From Thalia democratica (lineage: Eukaryota): 64,000 nucleotides of DNA. Each line of letters begins with the position of its first letter. Positions within the stretch are counted from its first letter, which is position 1. Where the stretch lies: the NCBI GenBank assembly GCA_965202585.1, contig OZ241832.1, positions 17,484,001 through 17,548,000 on the forward strand, written 5' to 3'. Both the position numbers and the translations under genes were made by a program. Shown in pieces: positions 1-26,160 of the stretch. The notes under the pieces were generated by a model, which saw nothing but the letters and a program-made list of their open reading frames with translations, had not been told where the DNA came from and did no database searches.

Positions 1-3000
1 AAAATCTTCTAAAATGAAGCATTAAACAGGATTTACATCGACATTTACAAACTTATTATAAAAAAAATGTTTTCCAACAGTTTTTTTACTACATTAACTA
101 TCCTTAACCTTTAACATACTGTCCACAAGAATTTGTTATACCAACATTTAGTTTCTTTGTTATGCTTTTGATGATAAACAAGACATTAGACAATTGATGA
201 TGATATAAAAAACAAAAGAAAATTAATATCAATTCGATTAACAGGGAGGGACGACAAGCATTGTTACGTCATAAAAACTGAAATATGCTTTAAACAAAGC
301 ATGACTCTTTTCAAGTATTAAAACATACAACAAACATACTTCAAAGTATCAGCAAACCAATATTAAAGTTTATTTGTTTACATTTTAAAACATTGAGAAT
401 TTTTGTAGGTATAAAAACTAAATACGTTAATTACGCCGTAAACTGAGACTAATATGCAAGCATAAGAACGAAATTAAAAACTTGAAGTATACAAACAAAA
501 CTTTTAGTGACATCAGAAAGAAAGATACTTTTAGTCTTCTAATTAATCTGAAAAAAAAATTCAACAGTTTAATTCAGTAGATGAAAACCTTATAATATGA
601 CTCAAAAAAAATACAAATTACATTTCAAAACCTTTTTAGCATATTACGAAAAACTACCGCAAAACAAAGTTAATATTTTCCATCTTGACATCGTTGATAT
701 CAACCACATGTTGTTGTTGTGATACCACATGAAGCACTGTGTTTCATTATGACGTAACAAACAAGACGTATGCGGCGTGTTTATATACATGTATAATTTC
801 TCCTTCTGTATATCGTGCTGCAACTTTCGCAAAAAATACATTTGCTTGCCTTGCAGCAGCCAAAAATTGATCTTAAAACAAGTAAAATATCGAAATGAAA
901 TATCATACGTTACCACTTTTTGTAATAAATTTTGTTTTGATGTTTTAGTTAAATTAAAATCTTAGAAAAGGTAACTGCTAGAAAAAAAGAAAGTAGTACA
1001 AATTATTTTTTTAAGTTCTAAATCATTTTGAAAACTTTATTTGCATTGAATTAAGACAAAAGTAATTTCAAAAAACTGTTAAAAACTCTAGTATAGCCTG
1101 ATAAAGTAAAGATTAAAATATTTCTATAACTTGTAAAACATACTTGTTTTATGATTAGCTTTAAAAACTTAATCAAATTTTAATAAAACAATTTGAAAAA
1201 ACTCAAGTTTAAACTACCAAAAACTAAAATTTTTTGTAATAACAACTGTCAATCTTTGTAAAAACAAAGTCTTTGTGACATCATAAAGCAATATGAACGA
1301 TGCAATAAAAACTTTATAATCACCTTTTGCTATGTGGATATTTGTTAAACGAGTCTTTCAATGTTTTGGCAAACAATTTAGTTGTAAAATTTTTATAATA
1401 ATTTTCAATAACTAGTATAATTTTTAATAGTTTTTAAATTAATAAAATGCTTTATTTAATGACTCATTGCTACGTTTCTGTTAAAAGTAAACTTCTACAG
1501 AACAATCTGATTGTTTTTAGATATATAATTTATTCTCTACACCATATAAAATATATATAGTTGTTTTAAAATAAGGCAATCAACTACATATTTATACTGA
1601 AACGTCACATGAAGCAATATGTTTTATTATGACGTCACACACGAAACGTATGCGGCCACTATATCGCATGGCGAATGCGGCGGATATAGTATCTGTATAT
1701 TTTTTCCTTCTTAATGTTATGCTGCGTTTTTAGTGAGAAATACATTTGCTTGCCTTGCAGCAGCAAAAACTGATCTTAAAATGAGGAATATATCGAAATG
1801 AAATATTATTCGTTACCACTTTTTGTAATAAATTTTCGCTTTTGGTGTTTTAGTTGAAGCAAGACTTGAAAAAGTTAACCCCCAAAAAATGTGATTGAAT
1901 ATTTAAGAAAAAGAGTTCTAACTTATTTTGAAAACAGTCAAAGCCTTGATCTGCTATGAATAAAGTCGGTAACTGTTTGTTAATAACTGTAATGATGTCA
2001 ACAAAATAACCATAAAAATTTTTATAACTTATAATATACTTGATTAAAGCTTAAACCTTAAACTAAATCAAGTTTCTAATAGAAAAGCTTAAAAAAAACT
2101 AGTATAAACCTGTAATTTTTTTTTTGTAGTAACAAAGATTAATCGTTGTAATAACAAAGTGTTTATGACATCATAAAGCACTATGAACGGAGGCAGTTGT
2201 AATGTAATAAAACTTTACAATCACCGTTTGTTTTTTGGATATTTGTTAATATATTTTGACAGCAGTGTTTTGAAAGCTGTTAAAACTAATTTATCTCGCT
2301 CTTACTTGTTGATTTATCACTATGTTTGTTGAAAAGTAAGTTTCGATACGAACTGTTTTATTGTTTTTAGCTGTATAATGTGATAGCTTTATTTTTAAAA
2401 ATGTATAGAATAGTTTCTTGGCTATGTTTACACTAATCATTTAAACTATTAAAACATTTTATGACTCGTTATACTTTTCTAACAAGTTTTATAAAGTTTT
2501 GAAGTCAGGTTTTTAGTTAAAAAATTGTAAGTTTTATTTTAGTGTATATAATTATGTTTAAAATATAGAAAAAAAATGATGATACTGTTTTTAATTTCTA
2601 AAACAAACTAAGAAATATTTAGTAAACGAAACTTAGTTTTGAATACAGCATTAGAGTTATTATTATAAAAAGGTTTAAAATACAGTAATAATGTAATACC
2701 AAAAAAAAAACATCTAATATAACTAATATATATACTATGTCATGTTTCGTATCGACAAAATAAAAAAAAATATAACGGCTATTTAAATAGACTACTCACA
2801 AGAATAATTTGTAGCTGTCTACAAAACTAACTTAAAATTTTAGTTTGCACTGAAACAACTTTGAACTTGTCCATATACTTTGCATATCAAGTTTTAAATG
2901 TTTTAGCTACCAAGTTACTAAAATACGTAAATTTCTAAATGCTTCTTCAGTTTAAATAAATAATAAACTTAGCAAAATAAACACATTTCTCATGACAAAC

Positions 3001-3092
3001 TAAGCCGGACTTCCATGAGGGTAAAGTAAGTAAAAGGAAATAAGTACGAAAAAATACGAAAAAGCTAATGCGTTAGTGACTAGTAAAAGAGC

Positions 3093-3200
3093 GATGTCAC
3101 TTTAGCACGGCGTCAGTTTATCACTGAGTGACACTTTAGTTACACAGAGCGTAACTTTGTCATGAAGTGGCATTTTAACAACGAGTAAAACTTTGAGCTT
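3093..3200. repeat. Shorter homologue of the ~18-bp tandem array (about 6 units)
   Basis: Shares CGTCA.T.TATCACTGAGTGACA.TTTA with 24443-24470 and sits at the equivalent position in U1. Confidence 0.65.
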
Positions 3201-4762
3201 GAGTTTAAACTCTTTTAATTAAAAATACAAAATAATGTAAATTAAGTTAAGTTAAATGTTCAACTGATTATTTTAAAATCATTTTGTTACCAGGTGAAAT
3301 ATTTTTAAAACTTTATATATTGAAGTGGCATAACAAGTTTTCTGTTATACTTTTGTTTCTCATTCACAATAAAAGTGAAAAAAGGCAAGGTGTCTTTGTT
3401 TTTAGTTAATGAAAGTAAAAATGTTAGATGAAGAAACTATTGTTGTTTTCAGAGTTGTTATAAAAAATAAGTCTAATAAAAATAACAGTTCATTAAACAA
3501 CTTAAAGATAAACTCTTAAATTTTTGTTTTATACTTTAAGTAAAAATTTTTAAAAATAACTAGACTTATTTATTTTTATGTTCTAATGGTGAATTAAAAT
3601 GCTTAAATAAATAAATATATATATATATATATATAAATGTGCAATAATTTTAATTTTAGGGGTAAATCGAAAAATTTTCAAAAATTTCAATTAGCACCTA
3701 CTTCGTGAAATTTAGGATTTTTACACTTATGTTAAACACTTTTGATTAAACAACAATTACTTACAGTAGTTAGATTAGTGACTAGTTAGTGCTGACTGTT
3801 TATTTTAAGCTTTGTATGAAATGTCAAAAAAATTAGAAATGTATTATACGTGTTTGCAGTAAGCTTAAAACTATTTTTAATGATGATTAAGTTATTTTTT
3901 TGTGCCCTTTAAACTTTTATTTTCAATGTTTCAATTAGTTAAAACGACTAGGTTTAAAATTTTTAAGTTTGTTTTAATTTTTTTGTTTTAAAAAATTGTT
4001 CTAAAATAAACATTTGTTAACGATAATAAATAAAATTATAAAAAAAAGCTACAAACTTAACAATCACCATAAATATATTATCACTGAGGTTTATAAAATA
4101 AAACAAGTTGCCACACACACTAGCATTACATATAAATGAACCGATGATTGAGTTTTTACGTGTCTTAATTTAAACTCACAAAAAAGGGGGTTTATAATCC
4201 TCCCTTTATAACTCTCTTCAATCATCGAGTAACGCTTAGAATCTTCTTACAAAAAAATTGCACTTGATAGATGAATTCTTGCTGAACTATTAAAAATAGA
4301 TGTATTCGATTTGCCAGCATTAACAATAACTCACAATAAGTTTTCTTGGTTTTTATTTTGCTTCGATTTTTTTTTAATTAGTAATTTGAAAATAACGACT
4401 TTATGCATGAGTTTAAGTTTATCAACAAGCGTACTTAAACTAAATTCATTATAGATCTGACAGACAAAAAACAAGTACACAAAAACGGTGTCTAATTTTA
4501 TTAAAGTAACCCAAGTTAAATCATTTAAAATATATCATATTACGGTTGCTTGCGTATACAAGTATCCAGATCATTTTACAATTTGCGGCTTAAATATTTG
4601 TATTCTGCAAGTTATGCAGCAGTTTGTGCCAAGTTTGTGTTTTGTAAACCTGCCAATAAAGTGAATCCGATCATGTAACATAAAACTAACAAAAGCCATA
4701 ATACTACTATCACACGCGCCAATAAAAAGAAAGCGGTCATCCTACAACATGTAACCATAACA

Positions 4763-5030
4763 CTACAACTTAACACTAAATTGAAACATAATTGAGAGAA
4801 TGTGTGTCTCTTCAAACACAAACAATAGGTACATTCAAAATAATTAAACTTTTAACCTTTTTTATTCTGATTACCAATTTAGTCAGATCAACCAATTAAC
4901 CTATGTGCTCAGCTGTGTGTCTTTTATATCTCGACCAAATATTTCCATAGCAAGAACAAGGTAACTATGCAATTACAACAGCTATGCACATTTTCATTTT
5001 TACTATTTTTCTCCGATAAGCTTGTTAGTA
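4763..5030 (+). promoter_or_regulatory. Block B copy in U1 (candidate donor AAG|GTAACT at 4961)
   Basis: Conserved GTCTCTTCAAACACAAACAA, TAGTCA.ATCAACC, CTCAGCTGTGTG, TTTCCATAG.AA and AAGGTAACTATGCAA. Function is inferred. Confidence 0.4.
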
Positions 5031-6917
5031 AACAAATTTTATCTGCGGTATTATTTTTGCGAAAGGGTTAATCAAAGCCTGCATCGCTCGATTTTAGCGA
5101 GTATAGTTGTTCCATGAGCCAAAAAGATCAAAATGTTCGGCTAGCCTCGTTATTTTGCTGTAAGGAGTAGCTAAGGTGGTAAAAACGAGTAGTTTACTTT
5201 CATTAAAAGTCTCATTAAAATTAGAAAAGCTGATTCATTGTTTTTAAATGAGTTAGTGTTAGTTGGTTACAATTATGAAAAATAAAGGTTTAAAGCAACA
5301 ATTTTACTGTCATTTAATGAAAGAATAGTTACAATGTAAGAAAAAATGTTTAAATGCTAAATGACTGTCAAAATCGATTATATACTTCGACTCTTTTAGA
5401 TAAAAAACTAACGTTAACTTTTGGACGTTTTAATTTCGCGCTTAAATTGATACAAGTTTTCTTGTTTACAAATGAACTTGAACTACTAATGAAATTTGAT
5501 ATTTACTACAAAAGAAATCAATTTGTAAGTTATCTCGCACTTTCTACGTTTCATAACAAAAATGCTATTTAAAAAATAGTTAACTGTTATTTGGTTTACA
5601 AAGTCAAGATTGATGCTAATTTGTTTCACCTTTAAAACTTAAACTTTTACTATCACTATTCATATAGTTATGTTTTTCAAGTTTAACCTTATTTACTAAA
5701 GTAAGTGCAAGATAATTTGTAGTAATAATTAATGTAATATTTACAGGTGTGCACTAATTAAATTTGAAGAATGGTGAAGTTTTTAAACTATATGTAAAAC
5801 ATGAGCTTTAATTATTAACACTTAATTATAATAAATGGCTATTGTAATCATCTCCTACATTAAAAGATAAACTAATTATTAATAAAAGTTGTAATTTGTT
5901 TTTTTATTTTTATTAAAAATAAGGGAAGAGAATTTTACATTTTTATTCGAAATTTGTCGATAATTTAGGCACGTGCCAAATTAAATGTAAACTGTTGAAT
6001 ACAATTAAACCTATGATTTGTAAATTACTTTGATAGTTCATCAATAAGTTTTGTTCAAGTAAAATAAATCGAAGTTTTTCTCTGAAAAAAAAAATATGTA
6101 CATTTTGATAGACTTTTAATATTTTTTCAATGATATTTGTAACTAAACAACTATTAGTTTAACAGCAAATTAGTTACTTGGCAAAGAATACCCGTAGATA
6201 TACGACGGATAAATCTTCTTTACAATAATTTTTCAAATTCAAAAAACAAAGTATGTTTTTGTAAAAATAATTAAGAGCTTTATAAAATGTAAGCAAAGGT
6301 TTCATATGTAAATTAATTAATTAACTTTATATGTTTAGTTAAAATTTGTTTTCACAACTTTTGATCTCTCTTATTTTACCTATAAGCACAGTAATATACT
6401 TTATTTGTATTTAGTGTACTCAAAGCTTATTAAACTTTCAATAGGTGCTTTTCCAAAAGCTTAGGTTGTTAACTAAACATTTCTTACAGTGTTTCTTAAC
6501 TAACTTGTATGCCTTGTTGATAAAAAAAAAAAACAGCTAGCTTATTATGTGCTGTATCAGGTGATATTATGTTTTAAATTTTTACAAAATGAGACTATCT
6601 AAATACGAACTGCAAACAATTTCCATGCTATTTTAATTTTACAGCAATAAAAAACAATAATGATGTTTTGGAAACAGAATTTTGCTACATAAAGTTACAC
6701 ATAAAGAAAATTAAGAGCGCTTGCCAATGTTTAACTACTTCCTTTACGACAATGAAACTTAGTTAGACCTATAAATAAAAACACCTACAAAATTACTTTA
6801 AAAAATATATTTTTTTAAATGATTTAATTATATAAAAAGTTTTGATATTTTAATGGCGAAATAAATAAAAATCCAAATGGGTTTCTATCGTCTCCAAAGT
6901 TATAGAAAAAATATACA

Positions 6918-6931
6918 GTTGCCATGGCGAC
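6918..6931 (-). promoter_or_regulatory. RFX X-box motif (GTCGCCATGGCAAC on the - strand)
   Basis: GTTGCCATGGCGAC at 6918-6931 is a near-palindromic match to the established X-box consensus GTHNYYATRRNAAC. Motif match only. Confidence 0.5.
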
Positions 6932-7034
6932 AAGAAAAAACTGTTGACGGACAGGAAAAGTATTAAATAAAAAAGCGATTTTCAGTTTTTTGTTTTTAAT
7001 GCAGTGTTGCATGCTTTTTAAAAGAAAATTCTTA

Positions 7035-7960
7035 AAAGATGAAAACCAAAGAAACCAAAATAACTTCTTATCTCGAGGTAATTACAAAATGACCAATCGT
7101 CTAAATTTGCCATAAAATAAAATAGAACTTAATACAAAAAAATATTTTGTATTCTACCTTCTCACATCAAGGTCTAAGTAATTGACTATGGTCTTTCTAG
7201 GTTTTGCTGGAAGTTTGATACATTAGCTTAGTCAGAACATTACTTTACTTAGTATTTCAAGCTGTTTTTATTACATTACTGTTTTTTCTATAATAAAAAA
7301 TATTTCTTTTGTAGTTTTTAAACTTTCTAAACAAAAATATCAAAATCTTCTTTGTCCTTGTTAAGCTCATACTTACCTAAATATCGCTTTTAACTATTTT
7401 CTAGTTTTTATCAGTTTAATATTAAAGCGTTTTAACAAAAGTTATGTATTAAAACTTGGTATGAAACTTCATTTTGAGCAAAACAAACATATTTGTTGTT
7501 TATCACCTACTTTATGACCAATTGTAAGTCATATTACTTCAGTAATTTTTTTTAATTGTTGCATATCTCATTACCAATTTCATGGTCAGTAAGAACACGA
7601 TATTTACTTGATGAATGTTCATATCACATCAAACAAACTACATAAAAAAAACCAACATAATGTTTTTGTAAAAACGCACAAAAAAACTTTCAAGGTTCAA
7701 CCTGTAAAAACATGGCACTGACTTTTTTTCTCTGACTGTTATTGTCGGGGTTAACAGTTTAATCTTGATAAGTTAAAATTCCAACATAATATCTTACCGA
7801 TAAATTGTGTGATTGTGAGATGAAAGTAACTACTGTTCATAATGTGTATAAGAGAATTGGCACTTAAACATATGTTTTGAGAGCCTCTTACACACTACAT
7901 GGCTGGCATTTTATCTAGTAACACTTTTACTTGATGCTACTCATAACAATTAAATTTCCA
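7035..7960. repeat. Non-coding blocks homologous to the Flrt intron (55135-56260)
   Basis: The exact 21-mer TTACCAATTTCATGGTCAGTA occurs at 7571-7591, 29222-29242 and 55900-55920. The colinear blocks 'AAGATGAAAA...TCTAAATTTG' and 'AGATGAAAG...TAATGTG' are also shared. Confidence 0.85.
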
Positions 7961-10900
7961 TTTTCAACAGCTTAACAATAGAGAAACATGAAAAATTTTT
8001 AGTTTTGTCGAAGTTTAAAGACTTATGTATGTTATCATAAAACATTACTAACTCGTAAACCAACCTTTTTTGACGATTAATAAGCCAGTATTTATGTGAA
8101 TTTCATTCAGATTGTATATTTTAAAGTATATATTTTACTTACATCGAACAATGTTTTGTTTTTAAATATTATTAATTGAAAATTTATGTCATAGTTATTA
8201 GGAAAAAGCGAATATAATACTTAGGTATTAACAAAACTGTTGTAAAAACGAACAAAGCTAACTTATTTAAATATAAGATATACTTTTTAGATTTTAAACA
8301 TGTTAATTTATAAAAAATATATTGTTTAATAATTATAATGTGAAAACTATAAAAACTTTTAGTTGTTCGAAGTAGCTGATATTAAAAACTATTTTTATAT
8401 TAAATTGTCTATTTTTATTGGAATATTTTTTTTTATTATACTACGTACATTAAGAAATTCTATTAAGCCAAAAATGTGTTAAGTAGTTTTTAAAGCTTTA
8501 AAGTTTTCAGAAAGAAGTACTTTTCGTATTTTTTATTTATTATTATTTTCTTGAATTTTTTGTTTATCACATTTTTGACAAATTAATTTGTATATATAAA
8601 TCTATAATTCAGGCATGTTTTAAAGATAGTTTTTTAGCTTGAAATTTACTGCAAAAGGTTGTTTAATATGTAAAAATTATTAACATGTTGAACGATTTCG
8701 ACATAAAATTTATATAATTCTGATAAATTGTTTTATTAAAGCTACTGCTTACTTTTCATACTAACCTAAGTTGTATTTGTAACACTGTTAAGAAATATGT
8801 TATCTGTATATATAACTGGTCACGACCATACAATTAGTCATAAAACAAAAAATAATTATTGATAGTAGTTTTACTTAACTAATTTTATTAATGATAATTG
8901 TACTAATTTTAACTTCCATTTCAAGTTTAAAAAAAAAATATTAAAAAAGACTAAACGTCGTAAGTGTAATAAAGTTTAAATTTATTTATTATTATTTGTC
9001 TATCTATCAGCTAGTTTCGTCAATCTACACATGTTCACTAACTACTGAGAAAGATTGTACAAAACCTACTAAGTCGTTTTACCTTACCAAGTTCAGGTCA
9101 TATATACTATACATACTTAAGCTTAAAGTATTAACGTATAAGTTGTATAATTTATATGTTAATTATTTCAAATACAATGTACATTTTTTATCAATCTTTA
9201 AAAAAGCTATTTAAAACAAATAATTTTGTGAGAATCATATTCTTTCTTTTAACTTATATTGTTGACAAGTTTTTTTGAACTTTTTTGGCTAAACCTGTTT
9301 ACAGCTAGCTGCTATTTATTAGTATGACATTTTATTTTCTTTAACATCTTTTATGTATATTATGGTTTGTACTTTAATGGTTTGTTTTATTAATTACTGT
9401 TATTTTGAAAGGTTAAGTTTTTGATTTATTGCAATATTATTGTATTTTAAATCTTCACTATATTAAAACTTTTTTTTCAAATTTTTATTAAACGTCAGTT
9501 TCCTATAAGTGAAACAAGTTAAATATTGTTTATAGTAGTAAAAATTATAAATTAAAGTTAAAAGTTATTGTTTTATTCTAGTCAAGACTATTTAAAAAAT
9601 TTAATATTACTTATTATTGTAAAGAGTGTTTGTTATTTAGAAACTATTCATAAAAATTTTTACAGACTTGAAAAAATGAAAAAGAACTAAATACAAACAT
9701 TAGTACATGATAAATACAAATATTTGAAAGAAAATCGATCTAAAAATTAAGCATTTACATCTAGTTGAAAAAACTTGTCTATGAACTGTTAATGTCTGTG
9801 GTGAACTTGATAACATGTTTCAATGTTTGTATTTGCTTGTTTTTATGTTGTTTGAATGAAATAAATTCTCTAATCATAACACATTTGCTGTAGTTTTATA
9901 CATTTAGCCTTGACTTTCCTACATTTATCGAAAACACGGAAAAACTTTAATTCGTTTTATTTTTTGATTCTATTAAACTATTTCTTTTTTTTCATACAGA
10001 ATTTTGTTTTGATATACAGATATAATTTTCAGGGCTTTTTTTTACTTTATGGTTATGATTTATTGTTTTTTTATTGAATAATAAAGTATTTGGTATTGGA
10101 TTTAGTTTAACTTTGTAGTCAGTTATAAGTTGCTATGATATAATTAACAGTTAGATTTTTTATTTATTTATTATTTTTAATTTAGTTAAGTTTACAAAAA
10201 AAAGATTAGTAATACTAATTATAGAAAGTATATTTATAGCGCAGTTGTTAGTTTTAGTTATTATGAACTAATTACACTACTTTGTGTTGACGGGTATAAT
10301 TTAATACCAAATAGTAATTTATTAGTATTCCCAGTAGACATCGATATTCGATACAAGCTTCATTAATGTGTTAAATTCGTCTAAAAACTTTTATTTTAAT
10401 TAGTTTAAACAGTTCAAACTAGTCTTTTGTCAATTTACTTTAACAACCAGTTGCTAAAAATGTTTATTTAACAACTGTTTTTTCATCTTTTTTCAGCATA
10501 TAACTAAGTTAGAATTTTATTGAAGGCTTAAGAGTAATTATTTATAGTGTAAGTGTTATTTGTAACTATTAATTACACTACTTAGTGGTGACGGATATAA
10601 TTTAACACCAGACAGTAATTTGTTTTTTATGTATTCCCAGTAGACATATATATGAACTTCATTAATGTTTTACAATCGTCTAAATTTAGTTTTATTATAT
10701 TTTAATGCATCTACAAAACTTATTCAAGTTTTTAAAATAAACAATTTACACTGGTTGCTAAACATGTTTATTTCCAACAGTTTGTTTGATCTATTTTCAG
10801 CAGATAATTAGAGTAAAATTTTTATTGAAGGCTGCCAAAGTTAATAGTAAACTAAACATTTGTTCTTACTTTAGTACATTGTTTATTTTGTATCTAGCTT

Positions 10901-12052
10901 TCAAGTTACAAGGCTTTCAAGTTTTTTTTTTGTGTGGTATGTTTTTGGCAGTAAACTTAGCATGTGTTTTGTTTTTGAAACTTTTGATCAACAACTTTAA
11001 GTTAAAAATTACAACAGTTTTTTTTTTGCTTTAAAAAAAGTTTTGACACAAAAATTCAGAGTTTTGACATTAACTTTATTAACTTGTAATATGGGCAAGT
11101 CTGTCTATTTTATGTTTGTATCTAAAATTAGCATTTGCATAAAACTAAATGCAAGTTTAATTTTACTAGTTTTCATCTTTAAAAACTTTCACGTATTTAA
11201 AAAAAATAATTTGTTTTAATTACGTTTTAGTTTATAAAGTCGGCGGAAATTTTCATGGCATAGAAAAATTGACTATGCCTTGCTTGAATCTTTGTGGCCA
11301 CTCATCACAACTTGAGCATTAAGGTTTCGATTCTTCCCAAATTGCATGCTGTTTTTTATTTATCAGGTTGTAAAGCTTCTATGTAATTAAAATTTCGCCT
11401 TGCTTCATTTCTAATGTTTTGAAAATTGTTAAAATTGAAACAGCTTGGGTTGGAGATTTTGTTTTGATAAGTTGGCTTTCTTTTAGTGTTTATGTAGGCT
11501 AACATACTTTGCTTTTGTAAACATATAAGTTGAAATAGTATGATTTTAATGTTTAATTTTATTAACATTTATTACTTATGTATGAACACTAAGTGTTACT
11601 GTTTTGAATATATTCATTTAGATATTCATATAACTATGTTTAAAAACTTACAAATGTAAATTACAATGTAAGTTTAAATTTTTTATATATATACTATAAA
11701 CATATTCAGAAACTTATAAGGCTTCGGTTTTAAAGTAATAAATTAATTTAAGACTAACTTGTCTTCAAAGTAGAAAAATAAGATTTAAAGTGAAATAGTA
11801 GATTTTTAACAATTTTTTGTCCGTATTAATTTAAGTTTAAATTACAAATGAGAGCATTTACTTTGAACTTGCTAATTATACTGTTGTAAAACTAACTAAT
11901 TTGGATTACAAAACGTATCCTAAGTAAGTATTAATGATTAAAAAGAAGGTATTTAGTTAATATCATTAACCTAATACTATCAAAACATAATAAAAGCAAT
12001 AATTCAATACTAATATTAACTAATTAATCAAGTCAAAATACAAAAATCTACT

Positions 12053-12178
12053 TTAAAGAGGCGACTTAAGATGTTGCAGTGTTTAGTGTAAACTCGGCAG
12101 GAGAGAAAAATCCAGTTTACAAAACAATAACCCGGAAAATCATTCAAGCGTGAAATGAGCCCCCATATCAGGTTACCT
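12053..12178. other. Highly conserved 126-bp non-coding element (copy in U2)
   Basis: 125/126 identical to 43459-43584. Decayed copies at ~23095-23200 and ~33370-33460. Confidence 0.85.
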
Positions 12179-13898
12179 GTTTTTTGTTTGAAAAAAACCA
12201 CTTCAAAAAATGTCACTCGTTGAAATTCTTTTGAAAGTCTATAAAAGTAGTTTTTCTTTTAACATTGTGTTTTTTATTTTCAAGTTCTCTTATTAATTAT
12301 TATATTTTATGTTTTTGATAATTTTCAATTGATTGGATTAACGCATTCAACAAACTATCTTATTTAAACATTACAGTTGAAAAAAGCAAGTTTTAGCACT
12401 TTTTGTTTAATTTGAAAGTCACTGTGTGATAAAACACTTCAAAAGTACTCGAAAAGTTCTTTAGGTTTATTAAATTTATTGAATTACGCTAACTGAGCTG
12501 ATAAGAAACAGATTCACTAATTAGAAAACTTTAACTCAAAATTTACTCGGTTTTTTCAAAAATTGTACGTGATATATATGATCACTAAAAAATTCAATTT
12601 AGTTTACATTAACTATTTTAATAACGGAAAAATAAAGGGTTGGGAAATCAAATAAAAATTATTTTCTTGCAATGTCAAACAGTTAACAGAAAAATGACAG
12701 AAAATTCACAAAGCTCGAAGTTTAAAATTTTTTTATGAAAAGATGGCGCTTCGATAAAGTCTAAATAAAACTTAAGAAAAGTTGACTTTTCCAAGTAAAA
12801 AACTTGAAATGCGATTATTACGTCATATTATTAGTACAATCGACATCGACTTTTATAACGGATTTTTGACATAGTAGTTGATGTATGAGTTGTTAACAAT
12901 GAATCGTCTACTTGATTGTTGATAAATGTTTATACACTAGTATTTGGCTCGGGTCATATGTCACGTCTATTTGAATATATTTATACTATCAGACGTCTCA
13001 GAGTCTATTATGATGCTTTAATGGTCGGTATTATCGATGATTTTTAATTATTGATTTATATAAATTGCTTTTACTGCGGCAATGATATCTAAACAGCTAG
13101 CTTTTTTTTAAACTTTTTTTGACCTAACGTCTATAAAAATAACCTTAAAAGGTAATGAGTTGTTTTAAAATGCGCAATGAAAATAACTAAATAAGTTATT
13201 TTATTGACATTGTTTAAGTTGCTCTTCAACGTACGTTTGTTTTGCTTATTTACTTTGCAAATAAAACAAACCACAGGTTCTATTGTCTATATCTAAATTT
13301 TTATAAGAAATGCTTATTACGTAAAAACTTTTCTTTGACGACAGAATTGTTATGTTAACACGATACTTGTTATCTTGTATGGTCTAAATATTTAATAACC
13401 ATAAATTTTCAGATTTTGCACTTGAAAGCGTTTTAAACTTATACATGTGTATGAAAACGTTGTAGATTTTTCTAAACAGTCATTTGATTATTTTTGTTTT
13501 GCTTGATGCGATAGAAAATTCACAAAAAGATACTGACTGTGTCATGGTCAGATTTAAGTGCTATTTTAAATAAATGTCTTATCGACTTTATTTGAAAAGG
13601 TTTTTCAATTTAAAATTAAAATATTCAATGTAGCTAAACAGTTTATAAAGATTTTTATTATACTTATATACTTATCTATAATAATTTTAATGTTCATTTA
13701 GTTTTCAAAATGAAATTAAGCAGATCCTTTACAGCGTTGAATTAATTTTTAAGCAAGGAAATAACAAAAGGTATATGTATTTTTTTATTTAGCTTAAAAG
13801 TCTACTTCGTGATATTCAAAAGGTTAATTCTTGCTTTTAAAGATTTGTGTTTAAGTATTTAAAGTACGTAATTGATTAATTATATGATTAGATTAATG

Positions 13899-14606
13899 CA
13901 GGGACGTAGCTTGGTAGTTTCTGCAAATCTACAGAAACGTATTTTTATGTGCGAAAAAACTTGCAGCTTAGAAAGACTCTGCTTTCTTAGCTTTTAGTAT
14001 TCATTTATGCTTAGTTATGCACTCCTGAGAGATAGTTTTGACATATATGTACACTTTAGCATTTTTAGTGTCGTAAAAAATTTGAACGAATTATAAACAT
14101 CCAAATTGTAACATTTAGCGCGTTAAAGTTTTGTTTTGTCAAAAAGCTACAACGCAAAATTGAATCTAATAGAAGCTGTAGCTTCAAAAATCAAAATCAT
14201 ACAATTTTATGTTACAAAAATTTGCATAACTTGTTGTTACTATTGACTACGTTAAATGTTTGATTATACGTTTAAATGATTGAATTGAAACATTGAAACA
14301 ATATTAATGTTTTTGAGTTAAGATGTGATTTTTTTATACTTATTTTTAATAAATGTTTTCTGGGTTTACACAAGTGACATGACATAAAGAGTCATATGGG
14401 GTGTGGATCAAAATAAATTGCCTTGTATACAGTTATCACTCGTACTTTAACATTCCATTTTTGATGTATTAACATAACTGCTTATTTTCAGTTTAATTCA
14501 ATAATATTAGAGGTAGTTTAAATTGCTGTGTTCCCGCTAGGACGTGTTATTTCAGATGTTTTAGTTTTTGCAGATTCGTAACTTTTTTGAACTAGCTACG
14601 ACCCTG
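13899..14606. mobile_element. Non-autonomous hAT-type DNA transposon (MITE), 708 bp
   Basis: 13-bp TIRs CAGGGACGTAGCT / AGCTACGACCCTG (12/13 match). Perfect 8-bp TSD GATTAATG at 13891-13898 and 14607-14614. Absent at the homologous positions in U4 (~34995) and U5 (~45380). Confidence 0.9.
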
Positions 14607-17600
14607 GATTAATGACTTGATAGTGCTGTTTGTCTAGCTTAACTTTATTCTAACTGCAAATCATGAATATACCAGAAATATGATACTGATTTTCAAGTTT
14701 GGACAATAGTTTCAAATTATGAACATTTCGCACTAATTTTCGAGATTGACTGGTACCAGTTGTCAGAACACATTTTTCATGAGATTGCATTATACAAATA
14801 ATTTTTTTTGAAAAAAAAGCTTAACACTAGTATGATTAATTAAATAAATACATAATGCTTTTTTTTTTCAAAAGTTTCAGCAACTTTAAAACATAAAAGG
14901 ATAGAACTAATCCTAAAACTAAAAATATAACTATTAATTGGTTTGGAGAAAAATTTTCTCAAAACTTTTAATTAAACATTTCACGTAAGATATGCACTTT
15001 TGATTTGCTTTAATGTGCGTACCTTATCGATGTTCCTACAGTAGTGCAGCTACGGTAATATATTAAAAAAACCAAAACTATCTAGAAACAAAATAAATAT
15101 TTTAAGAAGCTTGTGTTCTTTTGCTTGCAAATACAACGAAAAAGTTGTGAATATATCTTGTTTTAAACATAACGGTTTACTGAAATTAAAAATTTGTAGA
15201 ATTAAAGAAAAAATATGCTTGATTCTGATATAACTGTAATTCAAAATCTCTACGGCTGTTTTTTTTTATCAAAAAGTTTAGAACAGCAAATTTAGTTATT
15301 TACCATTTACAAAATCAATTATATAATATAGGTTATTCGAAGCATTTATAAAGTTCAACATTTTTAAAACAAATTTACCGTAAAGTGATTTGAAGTATTG
15401 CAATGATAAGATTCGCCTAATTAGAGTAAGAATTATTTCCTACAGCAGAGGATGAAATTACTATGAATCTATGCAACTAAAGCATACACATCTTTGCATG
15501 CATAATTAGCTGACTATTTAATTGCAAACAAATACTAAGCAGATTATTTTACAATTGTATTTGTAGATCGGTAAATAGACTAAAACTTAAAAGTTTTAAA
15601 TCATCTGACAGGTACTTTGATCAGTGAAAAACACATGTTTTGATTGCTATGTTCACAAAAATAGAATTTTTTATACAAAACGTTTTACAACAAAAGTAGT
15701 AAAGCTTTGAACCTTACATGTAAAGGTTTTTTCATTTCATAAAGTAATTTGCTGAACTTTTTTATAAAATTCATGTTTAATATCACTTCAATAGAAAATT
15801 AAAAAAAAAAACTTAGAGTAAATAAAAAAAGAAAATTAATATATTGCTAAATTTTGAGTTTTCAAAGTAACTTTTAAAACTGTATTCTTGAAATAAAAAA
15901 ACTTAGCATTCATATAACAGTGTTTTAAACTTAAAATTCAGTAAAAACTTATATGAACAACGCAAGCAATTAATGTCTAAATTACTCTTTGTTTGCTTTT
16001 AAAAAGACTTAAATAGTTTTAAATAAGTTATTTTAAGTAGCAGAATTTTGCTTGTTATTATTAGAAACACATTTGTACTGTCGAAGTATATTTAACTGTT
16101 GTACTTTTTCATGTAAAAAGAGTTTAAAATATCAAAAGAAAATAACAAAGAGGGAAAATATACTTACGTTTAAAGTACATATACAATACTTACAAAGTAT
16201 GTTGGTAAATACGATTTTAAACTATTAAGCATAATGATTATAATTTATCTATACTCTACCATTAAGCCTTTCACATAGTTAGCGTTTAAAGTAACATTTT
16301 TTTTTGCTTAAATACAAAAGAAGCTATCATTTGGCTACAACACTTATATTTTTATGTTTTTAATTCCTAAAAAGATCTCTTCACAGTTTCCAAATTGACA
16401 TAAACGCCTGTCAACAACACATGCTTATCCTTAAATTAAAATCACGTTAAGTAAATAAGAAGCTCATTTGCTCATAGAAGCTCAATGGTGCAGTAGTCGT
16501 ACTTATCGTTATATTTTGCAAAATATCAATTTTTTTTGTTTATCAAACAGGCGTTGATCGGTGAAGATTAAGTTCATAATTTTTTGTTTACCTTATCAAA
16601 AATTGAAGTGGGCATTAAACCTTTATATTTTATAATTGTTGATTTTATAGATAAAAAGTGCTAAAGTCAAGTGTTAGAAAACACTTTTGTGGTATTTATT
16701 AAGCAATGTTACTGTGTTAGAATATAGTTTAACAAGATTACCTGTAAAATTTTACAGGTGTTCTTTGTTTTTTAAAATTATTGATTACTTTTTCAATTAT
16801 TCATAATTGTCTATTGATTTGTTAAAAATTATTGAAGTTTAATTTATAACGTTTGTTTACCTTTTTATACTGATAAGTTACTTTTTTTGCTAGCTATTGT
16901 TTTAAACTATATTTACTAACTTAGATTAGTTTTGATATTTAAATCTTATGTTAAACTACACTTAGTAGGATAAAAAAATGTTTGAACTTTATTTAATATA
17001 TTTTATATTAGCTTCTAAACCATGTTGTCGTTAGAACTATTTTTTAGCAATGTTAATAAAATTAGCAGAGTTACATTACAAATTAAAACTTCCTTTGTGT
17101 ACAAAAATAATTTCACAAAATTAGCTTCGTCTTACAAGTGTTTACATATTATAGTCACTAATCGCATTATAACTAAACGCTGAATTAACCTTGAGGCTAA
17201 AAGGCTTCATTGAGGAGTCAAAAACTGGAAATGTTTAAACAAAAAAGAAATTTAATAGACTTAAATAGTTTTGCCTAAGTATTTGAAAAAAATACTAATT
17301 TTACTAATAAAATCAAGATTATACTTTTAAACTTTTTTCTTACATAAATAATCTCATACTTTTAATTTAAAAATCCTATGCAACTAGAATCGTTATAGAT
17401 TTTATTTTGATTAGTATAAAACAACACAGTTTATAAGTAAACTGTAAGCCCTTTAAAAAGTCTTTAAATAAATATATTTACTTAACAGATTTTTAATCCA
17501 GGCGTAGTTGTTAAAAGTTGTAACGTACATACTGAACTTTTCTTAAAATACCTCTGATCTTTACAAATTTCAAATTCAAATGATTTAATTTATCATAGAA

Positions 17601-20600
17601 TATAAACGTAGCGACAATATTTGCGTACCTTTGTTAGTTACAAGTTCTCTTTATTGCAAGACCTGACTTCTTAACTTTCTAATTTCAAATACGTGACGAC
17701 ACTGAATTAAGGGTTAGTACTAGCAGTAGAAAAATAATCTTGAAGTTCTAAATTTATTTCCTTTTTGTTTACATATGTACTTTTTAGATTTAATAAGTTG
17801 TTTGGAATATGTTTGAAAGAGTAGCATTGAGCATTTGAACATGAAAATTTCTATTCAATGATAAGAAAAGGACATTTATTAAAAAGGTCAGCTTCATCAA
17901 ATAAAAATCGTATTTATTCATGAGGTTTTGATCACAACTTTAAAATTAAAGTTATAATACCTTAATTATTAAAAAAAAACACAATTTAGTTACTTTAAAT
18001 TTCAAAAGTTCAAAAACATGTATAGTAATATAGATATTATGTATACATACAATAGTATTTGTAATATAATCTGAGTTAAAGTAAATAGTTTTGATTAATA
18101 ACTTAGTTCTTTTTCGTTCAAATACTTTTGTGATAAAAAAATACTTTTGAAATTAAAGTAGTTTAGCATGTATAACTTATATTACAAACTTTAATACCAT
18201 CTGCAAAAAAACGTAACAAATCTTTATCGATAAATTTTTTTTTAATGTTTTATAAGCTATTGTATACATAACAAATTAACGTGTGAGCTTTAACACATTT
18301 GCTATTATTATTTTTAAAATTGGTTCATTTCTCAAAATTTATCTAAAAATATCAATATTAATTCTATAATATTTTGAACGTTATATCTTACATAAGTAAA
18401 AATCTTTGTTGCTATATAAACAATAGAGTATAGCGCAATTTTAATTTTAAATTTTTCGATTTGTTTTTATATTGAAAAAGTTTTGTATTTGAAATTAAAT
18501 TACTATAACTTAATTATAATAAAATTATTTAAATTATTATATTATATTATTATAATAAAATTGCCTATTGTTTGAACAATCATTTTAGTTTATATTCTTA
18601 CATTATAGATTAAACTGAAACTTCCCTAAAACAGTCTTTTGAACCTTATTTTTAGATTTTTATTGTTGCACAATTTAGAGACGGTATAGTTAAAACTTTT
18701 TTGAAGTTTGCTGAAAATCGGTTGCGCGCCAAATTTAATGTAAACATTTCTCGCAATGACAATTAACTTGCGAGGATTCGTCACTTCTTTAGTTCATTCG
18801 TCAAGGAAAATCACTCAAAAGAACGTGACGCCGTCTATACAAATAATTTAAAAAATTTCCTGATCTATGAAAGCATGGTAAATTTTGTATTTGATTGATG
18901 TTCAAGATAAAATGCTTTCAAGCAAAATTTTATACTTAACTAATAATAAAGTTCATTTGCTCTAAAAAATAAAACTAAATAAAAATTAAATCAATTTAAC
19001 AAAGTAATCAAGGTTTTAAAAGCTTGTTTACAACTTCTCAACTAATTATAAAGTAAGCTATTAACAAAAACAGTGAGTATTTTCGTAATATTAGCCTACT
19101 TATAACAGATTATCAATTGCAAACATGACAAAATGCAAATTACCTACATAAAGCACAAACTTGTTTAAAAACAAACTCGAACTTTCTAGTGTTTAATAAA
19201 GTTATGTTATTTTAATCTTGCTTTATCTATAAAATGTAATTTGATTGTTATGAAAAACATCTACCTTTTTTATCATGATAAAACAAATATCTCAAACATC
19301 CTAAGTGTACTTTTTGTATAGCTAAAAATATTAGCTTTTTTAACATTTAGTTAAAAAAACATGAAACAAATACATGCTAAAAAACCTTTTTAGCATGTTA
19401 CATTAAATGACCGCCAAAAAATTTAATATTTTTCACTTGACATCGTTGGTATCAACTACATACTATTATTGTGACGTCACATGAAGCTATATGTTTCAGC
19501 ATGGCGTAACAAAAGAGACGTATGCGGCGTGTTTGTTATCTGTATAATTTCTCCTTCTGTATTTTATGCTGCACTTTTTGTGAGAAACACATTTTCTTGC
19601 CTTGTAGCAGCCGAAAAAAAAAATTCGAATGTAAAACATCAAAATTTAATTATATTACTAATAAGTTTTAGTTTGTGATATTTTAGCTAAAGCAAGAATT
19701 TAAAAAATTAACTGTCAGAATAAAATAAAGTAAGAAATAGTAGTTTTCAATTAATGTTTTAATTTGTTTTGAAAAGAGTCTAAAACTTTATCTGCTATGA
19801 ATAAAACTAAAACACGTTTTGACCATTAAAAACTAAAGTTTATTGTAATAAAAACTATTAATCTGTATAATAACAAAGTTTTTATGACATCATAAAGCAC
19901 TATGAACCGTTGCAGTTGTAAATGTAATAAAAACATTATAATTACATTTTGCTTTGTGGATATTTATTAAATGAACCTGTCAATATTTGACAGCAGTATT
20001 TTAAAACTTGTTGTATATCATATTTTTCTGGCATTTATGTGTGGATTTATCACTATGTTTGTTTAAAAGCTATATAAGTACACTGTTATATTGTTTTTAG
20101 CTGAAAAATAGGTTAAATTTAGTAGGTGTAAATAAAAAATAGTTTTCAGGTTATTTTCCTATTCATAGTTTAAAATTTTTCATTTACTTTAGTCACATAT
20201 TTAATAAACATTGTTAATTAAATAATCTTTTAAAATATTTTAAATGATATTTTGAATTTATTTATTAACAGTTAAAGTTTGTTATTTTTCAGTTTAGTAG
20301 AATAGAGTAGTTTATGTTTAATAAATATTTAGATATTAAATAAAAACTATTGTTTTAAAAAATACTTAGTTTTTTATTATTGAAACAAATAAAGAGTTGT
20401 TTATTGTATCTAAGTAGTCTAAAGTTTTTCTACCAATATGTATCTAAAAAAATACTAATTAATGTACTTTTTTTTTTTCTAAAATCGTTTTATGTTTTGT
20501 TTAAAAAAACAAGTTATAATGGCATAAACTATAGTTATAAGCAAATTTCTCACAAAAAACTTCATAAACATGAACAAAATTAATCTTAAATTTGGGTATG

Positions 20601-23600: not shown

Positions 23601-24297
23601 TCTAAAGCTGTAATTTACTGCAAAGCATTTTGATACGAGATTTGAGTTAAAATATCAACTTTTAACGATTCTAACATAGAACTTATGCACAGATTTTACT
23701 ATGATCAACGCTTACGAAAAACTTTTTTTTATAGAAGAAACGTTTTAACCTCAAAGGAAAAAAAGTCATGTGACACATTGTACTAAAAATAATTTCTTTA
23801 AGCTTTAAGTTGAAAGTTGTTATGAAAAGAAGCAATGACAAAGTTTTAAACTGAACAAAAATTAACTTTGTAGACTAAGAAGCTCAAGATGCGATCATGA
23901 CACCTTAAGATTTTAACTTACGACAATACTAAAGAAAAACTTAAAACTTTTAATTTTTTATCCATAACCAGACTAATTAACAGTGAATACATTTTATTTT
24001 TTTTTGTAGAACATTAAGTTAATCTTTTCTTGAATCCAATATTTTATGTATTGAAGTATTTTTCATACTTTCTTAACACAAAAATAGGTGAATGAGATTA
24101 CAGTCAAAAATTATTTTAATAATCGCTATAAAAAATTTAAGCTGACCCACTTAATTTTTTGTTTACTTGTTTGTTGTGTGACATTGAGGTCAGTACTATT
24201 AACTTTATATTGTATTTAAAGTAATTAAAACAAACCATCATTGAATATGAAATTTTAAAGTTAACTAAGTTTTTTTAAAACAGTTAAAAGATAAGAG

Positions 24298-24520
24298 TAG
24301 GTGTCAAAATCGCACAGCGATAATTTAGCACAGGTAGTCACTTTGTCACAGTGTCAACTTTTTCACGGAGTGACACTTTAGTACAGAGTGTCACTTTAGC
24401 AACAAGTGTCAGTATAACACAAGGCGTCACTTTAGCAAGCCGTCACTGTATCACTGAGTGACATTTTAACACGGAGTGACACTTTAGCACAGGTCGTCGC
24501 TTTAGCAACAAGCGTATATT
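24298..24520. repeat. Degenerate ~18-bp tandem array (consensus ~GAGTGACACTTTAGCAC), about 12 units
   Basis: Visible periodic GTCACTTTAGCA/GTGACACTTTAG units. Resembles the subterminal repeats of the 38736-39004 element family. Confidence 0.75.
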
Positions 24521-26160
24521 TAAACTTGAGTTCGATTATATTTTAATTGAATGCACAAAACAGTTGTAGCTTAAATTAAGGTCAAAATTCAATTCATTAT
24601 TTTAAATCTTTTTTCTTAACATAGTACAATATGTACTTTATAACATTAAAATTGCATAAACAGTTTGCTATTACACTTATGTTTCTCATTTACAATGTAA
24701 GTAAAAACAAAACAAGCCAAGTTGTCTTTTTTTCCAAAAGATAGATTAAAACTTTAGGTGAAGTTATTGTAGTTTTAGAGTTGTTATATAAATAAAGTTA
24801 TTTGAAAACAACAGTTGATTGTACAAGCTAAACATAAACTGCTCTAATTTTCTTAATTTTTTTATTAAAACTTTTAAAAGTTGACTAAATTTATTTCTTT
24901 GGCTTTGTTTTCTAGTGGTGAATTAAAATGCTAGAACAAAGATAAACAACTGTGCGATAAATTTAATTTTTCATACAGGTAAATAAAAATAACTTTTTAA
25001 AAGTAACATTTAAAAAAGCATTTACTTCATGAAATTAAAAAGTTTACTATAGGACCTTAACATTTTTATTAAACCCTTTTTGAGTTTAACAACAATTAAT
25101 TTCAGTAATTAGATTAGTGACCGTTTAATTAAAGCTTGAACTTAAAGTTGGTTTATATGTGTTGTGTAAGTGTAGAACTATATTTAATTATAATTAAGTT
25201 TTATATTTTGTGCATTTTAAACTTTCTTTTCAATACTTAAAATGTTAAAACTCCCCGGCTGGTTATTCTAAAGTTTTAACAAATCGTCGCAATACTAAAA
25301 TTCGTTAACAATACTAAAAAATTTACAAAATACAACTACAAATTTAACCATCACCTTAAATATATTATCATAGAGACTTGAAAAAAAAATATTAACAAGT
25401 TGCTGACTGCTATAGATATAAATGAACAGTTAGCGAATGATGATGGAGTTTTGAAGTGTATCAATTTATACCTACAAGAAGGGGAGTTTAAAATTTCCTT
25501 CACTCATCGAGCCACGCTTAGAATCTTCGTACAAGTGCAAATCGTACTTGATAAATGACTTTCCTGCTGAACTGGTAGAAGTATAACTTTTCGATTTGCC
25601 AGAACAATAAAATTGTGCACATTAAGTTTTTCTTGACTGTTTATTTTGATTAAAATGGTTTATAAGGATTATTATTGTAAAAATAAATACTTTTTGCATA
25701 AGTAAAGGTTTGTAAACAAGTTTACTTCAGCTATTTGTTCTAGATAACTAACAGACGCAAACTAGTACAAAAACACAGTCTAGTTTAAGTAAAAATATAC
25801 CACTTCAAAAGCAGCATTTTTGTTGCTTGCTTTCAGAAATTTCAGGACTATTTTACATACAACCGGCTTATAGTTTTTCACTCTGCAAAGTATGCAGCAG
25901 TTTGTGCCAAGGTTGTGTCTTATACACGTGCCAATAAAAAGAGTGCGGTCATGTTACAGCATGTAACTATAACACTACAACTTAACACTTAATTGAAACA
26001 TAATTGAGAGAATGCGTGTCTCTTCAAACACAAACAAATAGAATAATTTTGAGTAATTTAACTTTTTGCGTACCTTATCGATTTTCCTACAGTAGTTTCA
26101 CTACGGTGATATATAAAATCAAAACTTTATCAACAACAGTTAAAAAAATGAAAAACTCAT

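Follow-up and report, generated by a model that had tools for sequence, protein, structure and literature searches.

U1, a segment of the 64,000-nucleotide stretch of DNA analysed in the present study (the window), is very probably a non-coding remnant left by a partial tandem duplication at the FLRT locus. It is mostly ordinary duplication debris, yet its surviving pieces are unusually well kept. The original prediction described U1 as a ghost copy of FLRT, and such a copy is real, since two intron blocks match the intact gene well above a reversed-sequence null. Its extent, its independence from the other units, and the amount of the gene that was copied differ from what had been proposed.

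The parent gene, as judged from its translated sequence, is a true FLRT, because its best PDB matches, FLRT3 and FLRT2, span the whole LRR domain. The alignment of residues 29-344 covers the FLRT3/FLRT2 LRR domains in full (LRRNT, 10 LRRs, LRRCT) with E=7.5e-37 to 2e-33, compared with 2e-20 for the next family. LRR_8 and LRR_4 are called by Pfam, and the translation shows a hydrophobic helix, LVLIILSTLLLLTVVATFSYCLF. Like vertebrate FLRT1-3, the gene encodes an LRR ectodomain matching FLRT3/FLRT2 end to end and carries almost its entire coding sequence on one large exon, and its product may likewise be a single-pass membrane protein; unlike them, it has a C-terminal tail split over at least one further small exon, and no FN3 domain is called by Pfam at E<=0.01. 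The two exons are as follows.

51565..53603, forward strand: FLRT exon 1, encoding the signal peptide and LRR ectodomain, a putative membrane-proximal domain and TM helix, and the greater part of the tail
56622..56772, forward strand: FLRT exon 2, outside the repeat array and without a copy in U1 or U3

The GTAAGT donor of exon 1 begins at 53604 and overlaps an in-frame TAA. One homologous transcript (L001) aligns to 51525-53594, the homologues P0001-P0003 match only 51565-53598 and 56620-56772, and in other species homologous transcripts have these two exons joined.

Self-BLAST, a dot plot, and chaining resolved the window into five head-to-tail units, 52-74% identical, in the order X1, Y1, X2, Y2, and Y3 plus the gene. 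The units are collinear and have common junctions, as in a tandem segmental-duplication array.

604..7968, forward strand: U1 (X1), a collapsed exon-less unit copy covering the upstream landscape and 5' FLRT to mid-intron 1
9046..19383, forward strand: Y1, upstream landscape only; it ceases to match the gene-proximal unit at the equivalent of 51315, which is 250 bp short of the ATG
19354..29596, forward strand: U3 (X2), the sister collapsed unit, with a proximal block at 27721-27855 and intron blocks at 28353-28529 and 29200-29506
29991..38753, forward strand: Y2, an upstream-landscape copy truncated at the equivalent of 49711
39021..51315, forward strand: Y3, the upstream landscape of the intact gene, with the proximal block at 50658-50837

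Within the window, FLRT is intact only in the last unit, and no protein domain was found in any other ORF of the array. The alignments indicate that X1 and X2 are each a collapsed copy of a whole unit of ~17 kb: X1 forms a collinear chain against 39021-57000 with a score of 546 (null, 232), the chain of X2 scores 996 (null, 225), and both retain, in order, upstream-landscape pieces, the promoter-proximal block, and two intron-1 blocks. U1 had been placed at 5921-7960 and was treated as an independent ghost; its true extent is far larger, and it is the sister of U3, with deletion breakpoints common to both within ~50-100 bp. In the ML tree, {X1,X2} is supported at 100% and {Y2,Y3} at 94%. The identities are 0.71 for X1-X2, 0.74 for Y2-Y3, 0.65-0.68 for Y1 with Y2 or Y3, and 0.52-0.56 for X-Y, where the distances are probably inflated by misalignment; the order of events also rests on alignments that are noisy at this divergence. 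The homology of X1 and X2 begins at 604 and 19354, no more than 30 bp from where Y1 stops matching Y3 (19383 = 51315), and positions 1-603 have no match to the Y end. Together, these features are the signature of a duplication junction of an X-Y block. The left 2.5 kb of X (604-2968 = 19354-20720/21944) was considered as a diverged Y start or exon 1 and rejected as either, with no significant match.

The strongest link between U1 and the gene is provided by the two intron blocks.

6904..7208, forward strand: U1 intron block 1, equivalent to 54999-55307 (88 bits, z=21.8)
7521..7951, forward strand: U1 intron block 2, equivalent to 55848-56256 (102 bits), with a 95-nt conserved core at 7547-7639
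54943-55307 and 55848-56256, forward strand: intron-1 blocks of the intact gene, with the core at 55876-55971; the repeat unit ends on the right at 56256

These matches refine the alignment of 7035-7960 to 55135-56260 reported originally, with identities of 61.6% for block 1 and 62% for block 2 (BLASTN +1/-1), and the best match of the same query to the reversed window reaches 57 bits; the z of block 1 was obtained using a composition-aware Smith-Waterman alignment. The 21 nt of TTACCAATTTCATGGTCAGTA recur unchanged at 7571, 29222, and 55900, and 0/100 shuffles gave a match. In the window, there are exactly three copies of the intron blocks, each collinear within a larger duplicated unit.

The other anchor is the promoter-proximal block.

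5814..6041, forward strand: U1 promoter-proximal block, with equivalents at ~50658-50800 (gene), 27631-27857 (U3), and ~18640-18830 (Y1)

The match of 5921-5995 to 50677-50750 in the original prediction was recovered as 5894/5902-5993 against 50651/50658-50748 (67%, 41 bits), but by itself this match is non-significant (z=3.4; score 32.3, null maximum 35.5). Its support comes from U3, because this third copy matches both U1 (5814-6041 against 27631-27857, z=13) and the gene (27721-27900 against 50658-50837, z=9.6-10). A common core was observed in a four-way alignment including the Y1 copy, and Y1 runs 520 bp beyond the block in register with the gene-proximal unit.

Between these anchors, the segment carrying the gene's first exon is missing from both collapsed units.

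50795..54998, forward strand: segment missing from U1 and U3, comprising exon 1 together with the 770 bp preceding the ATG and the initial 1.35-1.4 kb of intron 1
6042..6903, no strand assigned: U1 junction filler of 860 bp, without FLRT codons and without a match elsewhere in the window
27867..28257, no strand assigned: U3 junction MITE of 391 bp, Tc1/mariner-type, with TA flanks and terminal repeats CAGTGCTTYCTCRCT

The compact spacing noted earlier (~1.05 kb, against ~4.4 kb at the gene) was upheld with slightly smaller figures: 0.86 kb separates the anchors in U1 (6041 to 6904), against 4.2 kb at the gene (50794 to 54999). In U3, the MITE, which is absent from U1 and unique within the window, sits exactly in the deletion junction, and once it is removed the anchors are only ~105 bp apart. 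Since collinear anchors flank a gap far too small for the exon, the coding exon was lost by deletion, and the promoter and large coding exon of U1 would have been removed together by one 4.2-kb deletion. As U1 and U3 are sisters with the same breakpoints within ~50-100 bp, the loss in X1 and X2 is best described as a single common deletion, at the equivalent of ~50795-55000. The proposed mapping of the breakpoints could be carried out to this level, which is too coarse for microhomology to be read.

The filler gave no meaningful match to the whole window on both strands (Smith-Waterman, best z=3.6, not meaningfully above the null maximum) or to 50750-55000 on both strands (z=0.2 and 2.3), and it has no ORF and no domain. 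A copy of the U3 MITE, or of another sequence in the window, was rejected for lack of a match, and a TIR-like 17-mer at 6485, with 3 mismatches, is within chance. The absence of an LRR-coding remnant between the anchors and of an exon-2 homologue downstream of U1, both stated in the original prediction, was borne out. With exons 1 and 2 queried separately rather than as a joined 732-aa model, a relaxed tblastn search of the whole window with the 680-aa exon-1 product had its best off-target match at E=0.42 and none below E=4 in 5900-8500 or 27700-30000, the two intervals suggested for this search; DNA Smith-Waterman alignments of X1 and X2 with exon 1 stayed below z=2; and 56200-57200 and exon 2 against 7900-9200 and 29500-30100 gave z<=1. 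A coding remnant in U1 or U3 was therefore rejected, with exon 1 and three homologues (relaxed tblastn) as well as DNA Smith-Waterman alignments all blank.

The original prediction, in which a duplication was followed by deletion of the exon, thus holds for a duplicate of the FLRT locus and for the deletion, but not for the whole-gene extent, as the ghost homology stops at the equivalent of 56256, ~365 bp short of exon 2, and gives way to the next repeat unit. Because the unit homology ends in mid-intron 1 (56256 equivalent), a partial rather than whole-gene copy is favoured. The copy in U1 and U3 was probably 3'-truncated from birth, with a unit ending in intron 1 that never included exon 2, although a once-complete copy may have lost exon 2 later.

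Herein, we propose a history of the array consistent with these boundaries. First, a tandem duplication running from the upstream region through exon 1 and two-thirds of the way into intron 1 would have produced a 3'-truncated gene fragment incapable of giving a full FLRT protein. The fragment would then have collapsed via several deletions, one of which removed the exon. Subsequently, X together with Y up to ~200 bp before the transcription start would have been duplicated, giving X1-Y1 and X2-Y, and a further duplication of Y would have given Y2 and Y3. Later, the MITE would have entered the U3 junction, and ~0.75 kb of DNA with no match elsewhere in the window would have accumulated in the U1 junction. 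In this history, the exon would have been lost a single time, and Y1 and Y2 would never have had one.

U1 also retains slow-evolving islands in its upstream and intronic DNA.

4721..5182, forward strand: U1 conserved upstream island, with equivalents at 46020-46436, 26067-26600, and 35578-35972; absent from Y1

The equivalent at 46020-46436 lies ~5.2 kb upstream of the ATG, and the island matches Y3 with 188 bits and is 73-80% identical in all pairs. In the intron core, the identity between the gene and the ghosts is 81-86%, against ~60% in the flanks, and three-way invariant sites make up 76%, compared with 39% overall. When the ghost twins are compared, identity peaks (0.86-0.92; mean 0.74, sd 0.10) in exactly intron block 2 and the 290-bp upstream island. 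The retained islands are 2-3 times better conserved than their flanks, even between both ghost copies, which is not as pure junk decay predicts; conservation well above the flanks in all copies is what characterises duplicated conserved non-coding elements. The claim that flanking and intronic elements were kept stands in so far as such islands survive, but selection on them is unsupported, as ~26 slow-evolving islands are found across the array and gene conversion offers an alternative. The conservation of Y is over-dispersed (sd 0.15 against a binomial 0.065), which GC content and sequence complexity do not explain. The islands may be either cis-regulatory modules that are still selected or patches homogenised by gene conversion.

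Several other identities of the islands were considered. Exons of another gene were rejected, with stops in all frames, no 3-periodicity, and indels, and an open frame of 29-45 codons over the intron core is within six-frame chance in length and has no Pfam hit. No Rfam match at the gathering score was obtained in the whole window. The intron core was rejected as an ncRNA, with weak consensus folds on both strands (-7.5 and -11.3 kcal/mol) and essentially no covariation, and a C/D-box snoRNA reading was dropped with the D box missing in U3. A 450-bp shared element first considered as a MITE has no terminal inverted repeats and is better read as a conserved island. In metagenome contigs, both a 21-mer scan and a protein-guided scan for orthologous loci were blank.

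The explanation closest to the proposed history accepts the same origin of U1 and differs in its present state, with the exon-less units kept as shadow or multiplied candidate cis-regulatory modules for the FLRT gene 24-50 kb downstream. The modules would be the 290-bp island, the proximal-block core, and the 95-nt intron core, and the deletion would have taken only dispensable DNA. This reading, possible if rather unlikely, is suggested by the intron core and the top windows of the ghost twins described above, by the over-dispersion in Y, and by islands that are non-coding and without an Rfam family. The islands were, however, chosen post hoc, the contrast with the AT-rich flanks is exaggerated by their misalignment, both metagenome-contig scans were blank, and gene conversion among tandem units would yield the same patchiness and fits the 290-bp island, whose site patterns are not tree-like. 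The broader proposal that all four exon-less units form an amplified cis-regulatory landscape, with fixed short elements under purifying selection in every copy, is considered unlikely.

The remaining alternatives concern the origin of the relic itself. It is very unlikely that the intron blocks are a dispersed repeat that landed independently in the FLRT intron, U1, and U3 with no gene copy there: although the genome is MITE-rich and one MITE lies in the U3 junction, the three window copies share order and orientation and have other collinear unit pieces on their left, the block divergence tracks the unit tree with X1-X2 closer than X and the gene, the block ends are without terminal repeats or target-site duplications, no TE protein remnant is present in any ORF, and the 21-mer core was not found in metagenome contigs. 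The large neutral distance between X and the intact unit (internal branch of 0.46 substitutions per site) could hide an exon 1 mutated past recognition in U1, for example in the 860 bp of unassigned filler, but the anchor space of 0.86 kb in U1 and ~0.1 kb in U3, compared with 4.2 kb (2.04 kb coding) at the gene, leaves room for an exon fragment at most, and with a filler that has no similarity to 50750-55000 and negative tblastn and Smith-Waterman searches, such a decayed pseudogene is highly improbable. Finally, the indel was polarised from this one locus, and the compact arrangement of U1 and U3 could in principle be ancestral, with a 4.2-kb exon segment inserted in the last unit. This is hardly credible, as exon 1 must splice to exon 2 at 56622 with the blocks lying between both, transcripts of other species join the same exons, so that exon 1 is old and at this position, and Y1 continues 520 bp past the proximal block in the gene register. 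No polarity other than deletion works, given that the blocks sit between the two exons of a conserved spliced gene.

Read as what remains of a partial tandem duplicate, U1 is of an ordinary, known kind. Similar to non-processed, dead-on-arrival partial duplicates, it is a DNA-level tandem copy beside its parent with collinear flanking and intronic homology (the proximal block and two intron blocks in the same order and orientation), its 3' exons are gone, and it has shrunk by deletions, with a TE inserted at the junction. Unlike non-processed pseudogenes, U1 contains no recognisable disabled coding sequence, indeed zero coding sequence, and can be recognised via non-coding anchors only; without disabled codons and with no room for the exon, it is a relic or "ghost" rather than a classical pseudogene. 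A processed pseudogene (retrocopy) was rejected, as the survivors are intron and upstream DNA and not exon. The termini, target-site duplication, and protein of a transposable element are lacking; TIRs and TA flanks are seen only in the MITE at 27867-28257, which is a separate element. The head-to-tail units, the re-duplicated X-Y block, the coincident junction boundaries, and the patchy similarity resemble segmental arrays formed by unequal crossing-over, but, unlike in typical arrays, the gene is in the terminal unit only and the other four units are non-coding copies of upstream landscape or intron. As with duplicated conserved non-coding elements and shadow enhancers, islands of 95-290 bp outlast their surroundings in every copy, including the exon-less ones, and the copies all lie to one side of a single developmental adhesion gene, no more than 50 kb from it, a likeness in sequence that gene conversion could mimic.

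U1 exemplifies the loss of dead-on-arrival gene fragments through deletion in a genome that is AT-rich and duplication-prone. Moreover, such ghosts can be recognised from non-coding anchors after all codons are gone, which is useful for annotating the arrays of this genome. The survival of the same islands on independent branches is the one point worth following. If the exon-less units were an amplified landscape, there would be one FLRT gene with multiplied enhancers, the ex-intronic ones now lying 27-48 kb upstream. If selection maintains the islands, the array would be a natural case of enhancer multiplication with the duplicated gene body lost, and the 95-nt intron core would be a candidate FLRT enhancer in a chordate, probably a tunicate.

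U1, the exon-less copy of the FLRT locus, is what is left of a partial, non-processed tandem duplicate and forms one corner of an array of five diverged head-to-tail units, resolved by dot plot and collinear chaining:

604-7968, X1 (U1), exon-less copy
9046-19383, Y1, copy of the FLRT upstream landscape
19354-29596, X2 (U3), sister of U1
29991-38753, Y2, copy of the upstream landscape
39021-51315, Y3, copy of the upstream landscape
51315-56256, gene part, after Y3

The window (25.5% G+C, N runs absent) contains one long ORF, at 51565-53607 on the + strand, whose 680-aa product carries LRR_8/LRR_4 repeats, a hydrophobic helix and a tail. Among solved structures it matches FLRT3 and FLRT2 best, over their complete LRR ectodomains (E=7.5e-37 to 2e-33), with the next family at 2e-20. 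A large protein collection gave unnamed metatranscriptome sequences as the nearest proteins (73% and 64% identity), and these are longer at the C-terminus by ~85 residues. Part of this extension is encoded by a second exon, 56622-56772. Exon 1 ends at 53603, where a GTAAGT donor from 53604 overlaps the in-frame TAA closing the 680-codon ORF, and splicing to 56622 extends the protein by at least 52 codons; thus, intron 1 spans 53604-56621. The alignment of a homologue transcript (L001) begins at 51525, placing the transcription start at or before ~51510. The last ~37 residues and 3' UTR of this transcript (L001:2241-2612) have no counterpart in the window, and a further FLRT exon therefore probably lies past 64000 or has diverged.

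The original prediction that U1 joins a promoter-proximal block to FLRT intron blocks was confirmed. In a sensitive self-comparison, intron block 1 (U1 6904-7208 versus gene 54999-55307; 61.6% identity) scored 88 bits and intron block 2 (U1 7521-7951 versus gene 55848-56256; 62%) scored 102 bits, compared with a maximum of 57 bits for the identical query against the reversed, composition-matched window. Block 1 reached z=21.8 versus shuffles with a log-odds matrix fitted to this base composition, and a 21-nt string is identical across the three copies of the intron block, with 0 expected by chance. The proximal match (U1 5894/5902-5993 versus gene 50651/50658-50748) was also reproduced, but alone it falls short of significance (z=3.4; score 32.3 against a null maximum of 35.5); it is credible because a third copy, in U3, matches both the gene (27721-27900 versus 50658-50837, z=9.6-10) and U1 (27631-27857 versus 5814-6041, z=13). 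A four-way alignment including the copy at the Y1 end shows a common core in this block. As predicted, the anchors are far closer in U1 than at the gene (0.86 versus 4.2 kb). When exons 1 and 2 were searched as separate sequences (exon 1 by reference), no FLRT codons were detectable by tblastn outside the gene in the window (best E=0.42), exon-1 DNA gave no alignment to X1 or X2 (z<2), and nothing like exon 2 or the sequence past 56256 was found downstream of the blocks in U1 and U3, consistent with the predicted lack of an LRR-coding remnant and of an exon-2 homologue. With its codons all gone, U1 falls outside the usual definition of a pseudogene, and "ghost" is a fair word.

An origin of the intron blocks as a transposable element (TE) is unlikely: the window has just three copies of them, every one in its collinear place within a larger duplicated unit, their divergence tracks the unit tree, and neither termini nor TE protein remnants were found there. 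Insertion of the exon segment into the last unit, which would reverse the polarity, is untenable, as the blocks sit between FLRT exons 1 and 2 and the transcripts of other species join these two exons.

U1 is real as a ghost copy, but as a sister of U3 within the five-unit array and as a partial rather than a whole-gene copy. Y1, Y2 and Y3 each represent the 10-12 kb preceding FLRT (65-74% identical copies), and X2 is a collapsed copy of the entire unit of Y plus 5' gene, with ordered significant pieces equivalent to 41318 through 56183 (chain score 996 versus null 225). X1 is collinear with X2 end to end, and its chain to the intact unit scored 546 versus null 232. On columns common to all five units, identities were 0.71 for X1-X2, 0.74 for Y2-Y3, 0.65-0.68 for Y1 with Y2 or Y3, and 0.52-0.56 for X-Y; the ML tree grouped {X1,X2} (100%) and {Y2,Y3} (94%). 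Homology between X1 and X2 starts at 604/19354, within 30 bp of the end of the Y1-Y3 match (19383, equivalent to 51315, 250 bp 5' of the ATG), and the Y end has no match in positions 1-603, as expected if an [X Y] block was duplicated in tandem. The left ~2.5 kb of both X units (604-2968 and 19354-21944) have no detectable relation to Y, the gene or any protein family, and X1 contains an internal tandem duplication (699-1348 versus 1579-2249, 69% identity). A perfect 38-bp tandem repeat inside Y2 (31339-31417, 2.1 copies, 100% identity) is far younger than the array around it.

The coding exon is indeed gone and the anchors are collinear; however, the loss is common to U1 and U3 and extends beyond the exon. 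On the left, U3 stops matching the gene at 27855 (gene-equivalent 50794) and U1 at the corresponding ~6041 (U3 27857); on the right, the match resumes at 6904 in U1 (gene-equivalent 54999) and by 28353 in U3 (gene-equivalent 55047). Exon 1 is lost together with the 770 bp preceding the ATG and 1.35-1.4 kb of intron 1. These breakpoints agree within ~50-100 bp between the sister copies, so a single event in their common ancestor is the best reading of the 4.2-kb loss. The U3 gap is nearly all a well-preserved 391-bp Tc1/mariner-type MITE (27867-28257) with TA flanks and 15-17-nt terminal inverted repeats (termini TACAGTGCTTTCTCACT / AGCGAGGAAGCACTGTA), which has no second copy in the window and is missing from U1; once it is subtracted, the U3 anchors are only ~105 bp apart. 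A search of both strands of the window gave no match to the 860-bp filler of U1 (6042-6903), which has no ORF or domain. A 3.7-kb stretch of X2 (20720-24426), Y-like at 21944-23200 and 23712-23901, is absent from X1, so deletions went on independently after the two split.

In its most likely version, the history would begin with a tandem duplication that spanned the upstream landscape and exon 1 and reached two-thirds of the way into intron 1, yielding a 3'-truncated gene fragment. Deletions, one of them removing the exon, would have collapsed this fragment into X; [X + Y up to ~200 bp before the transcription start] would then have been duplicated, and Y once more, as far as the position equivalent to 49711. 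The exon would then have disappeared a single time, and would never have been part of Y1 or Y2. Duplication of the whole gene is not supported, since homology in both X copies stops in mid-intron 1, ~365 bp short of exon 2 (gene-equivalent 56256), where the next Y unit follows, with no exon-2 copy; later loss of exon 2 from a once-complete copy is possible. The U1 finding is real but mostly ordinary, with its coordinates (5921-7960) and history in need of correction.

The surviving pieces of U1 are not a random sample. A 95-nt core in intron block 2 (55876-55971 / 29199-29293 / 7547-7639) has 76% of its positions unchanged across the three copies, versus 39% for the full alignment, and is 81-86% identical between gene and ghosts, versus ~60% in the flanks. 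It is bracketed by the inverted strings GTTTGTTTG / CAAACAAAC, which we take to resemble forkhead-type sites; no convincing conserved fold was found, and one + frame stays open in each of the three copies (29-45 codons, with a 3-nt indel), which is within chance, and it has no Pfam match. Between X1 and X2, the 90-column windows with the highest conservation (0.86-0.92, against a mean of 0.74 and an sd of 0.10) coincide exactly with intron block 2 and with an upstream island of 290 bp (4740-5060 / 26130-26470), also present at 35645-35965 and 46010-46380 and missing from Y1 at about 15079-15104. This non-coding island is 73-80% identical in every pair, versus unit averages of 52-74%, and 85% by BLAST between 4768-5032 and 35673-35934. 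Local partial duplications of ~100 and ~230 bp occur at the island (25971-26066 / 26154-26249; 46274-46368 / 46504-46598). Conserved islands are not special to U1: Y1 (9687-17635) and the corresponding stretches of Y2 and Y3 share 26 non-coding islands of 30-296 bp, at least ~70% invariant in all three, with a longest invariant run of 31 nt (example TTAATTACACTACTTAGTGGTGACGGATATA at 10569), all of them candidates for cis-regulatory elements in the landscape upstream of FLRT. The Y units show over-dispersed conservation along their length (sd 0.15 versus 0.065 binomial), and GC content and sequence complexity do not account for this. All islands examined are non-coding and lack an Rfam family match, and two metagenome scans for related loci were both blank.

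Purifying selection on candidate cis-regulatory modules would explain this conservation; patchy gene conversion among tandem units would explain it too, and fits the star-like, non-tree-like sites of the 290-bp island (7/8/3 informative sites), a pattern that suggests either strong constraint or ectopic gene conversion. The island-flank contrast is also overstated by misalignment in the AT-rich flanks. Flanking and intronic elements may have been kept by selection, or may look kept through gene conversion, with misalignment adding to the contrast. The sole non-trivial lead is that these islands are conserved even in copies of the FLRT locus that have no exon.
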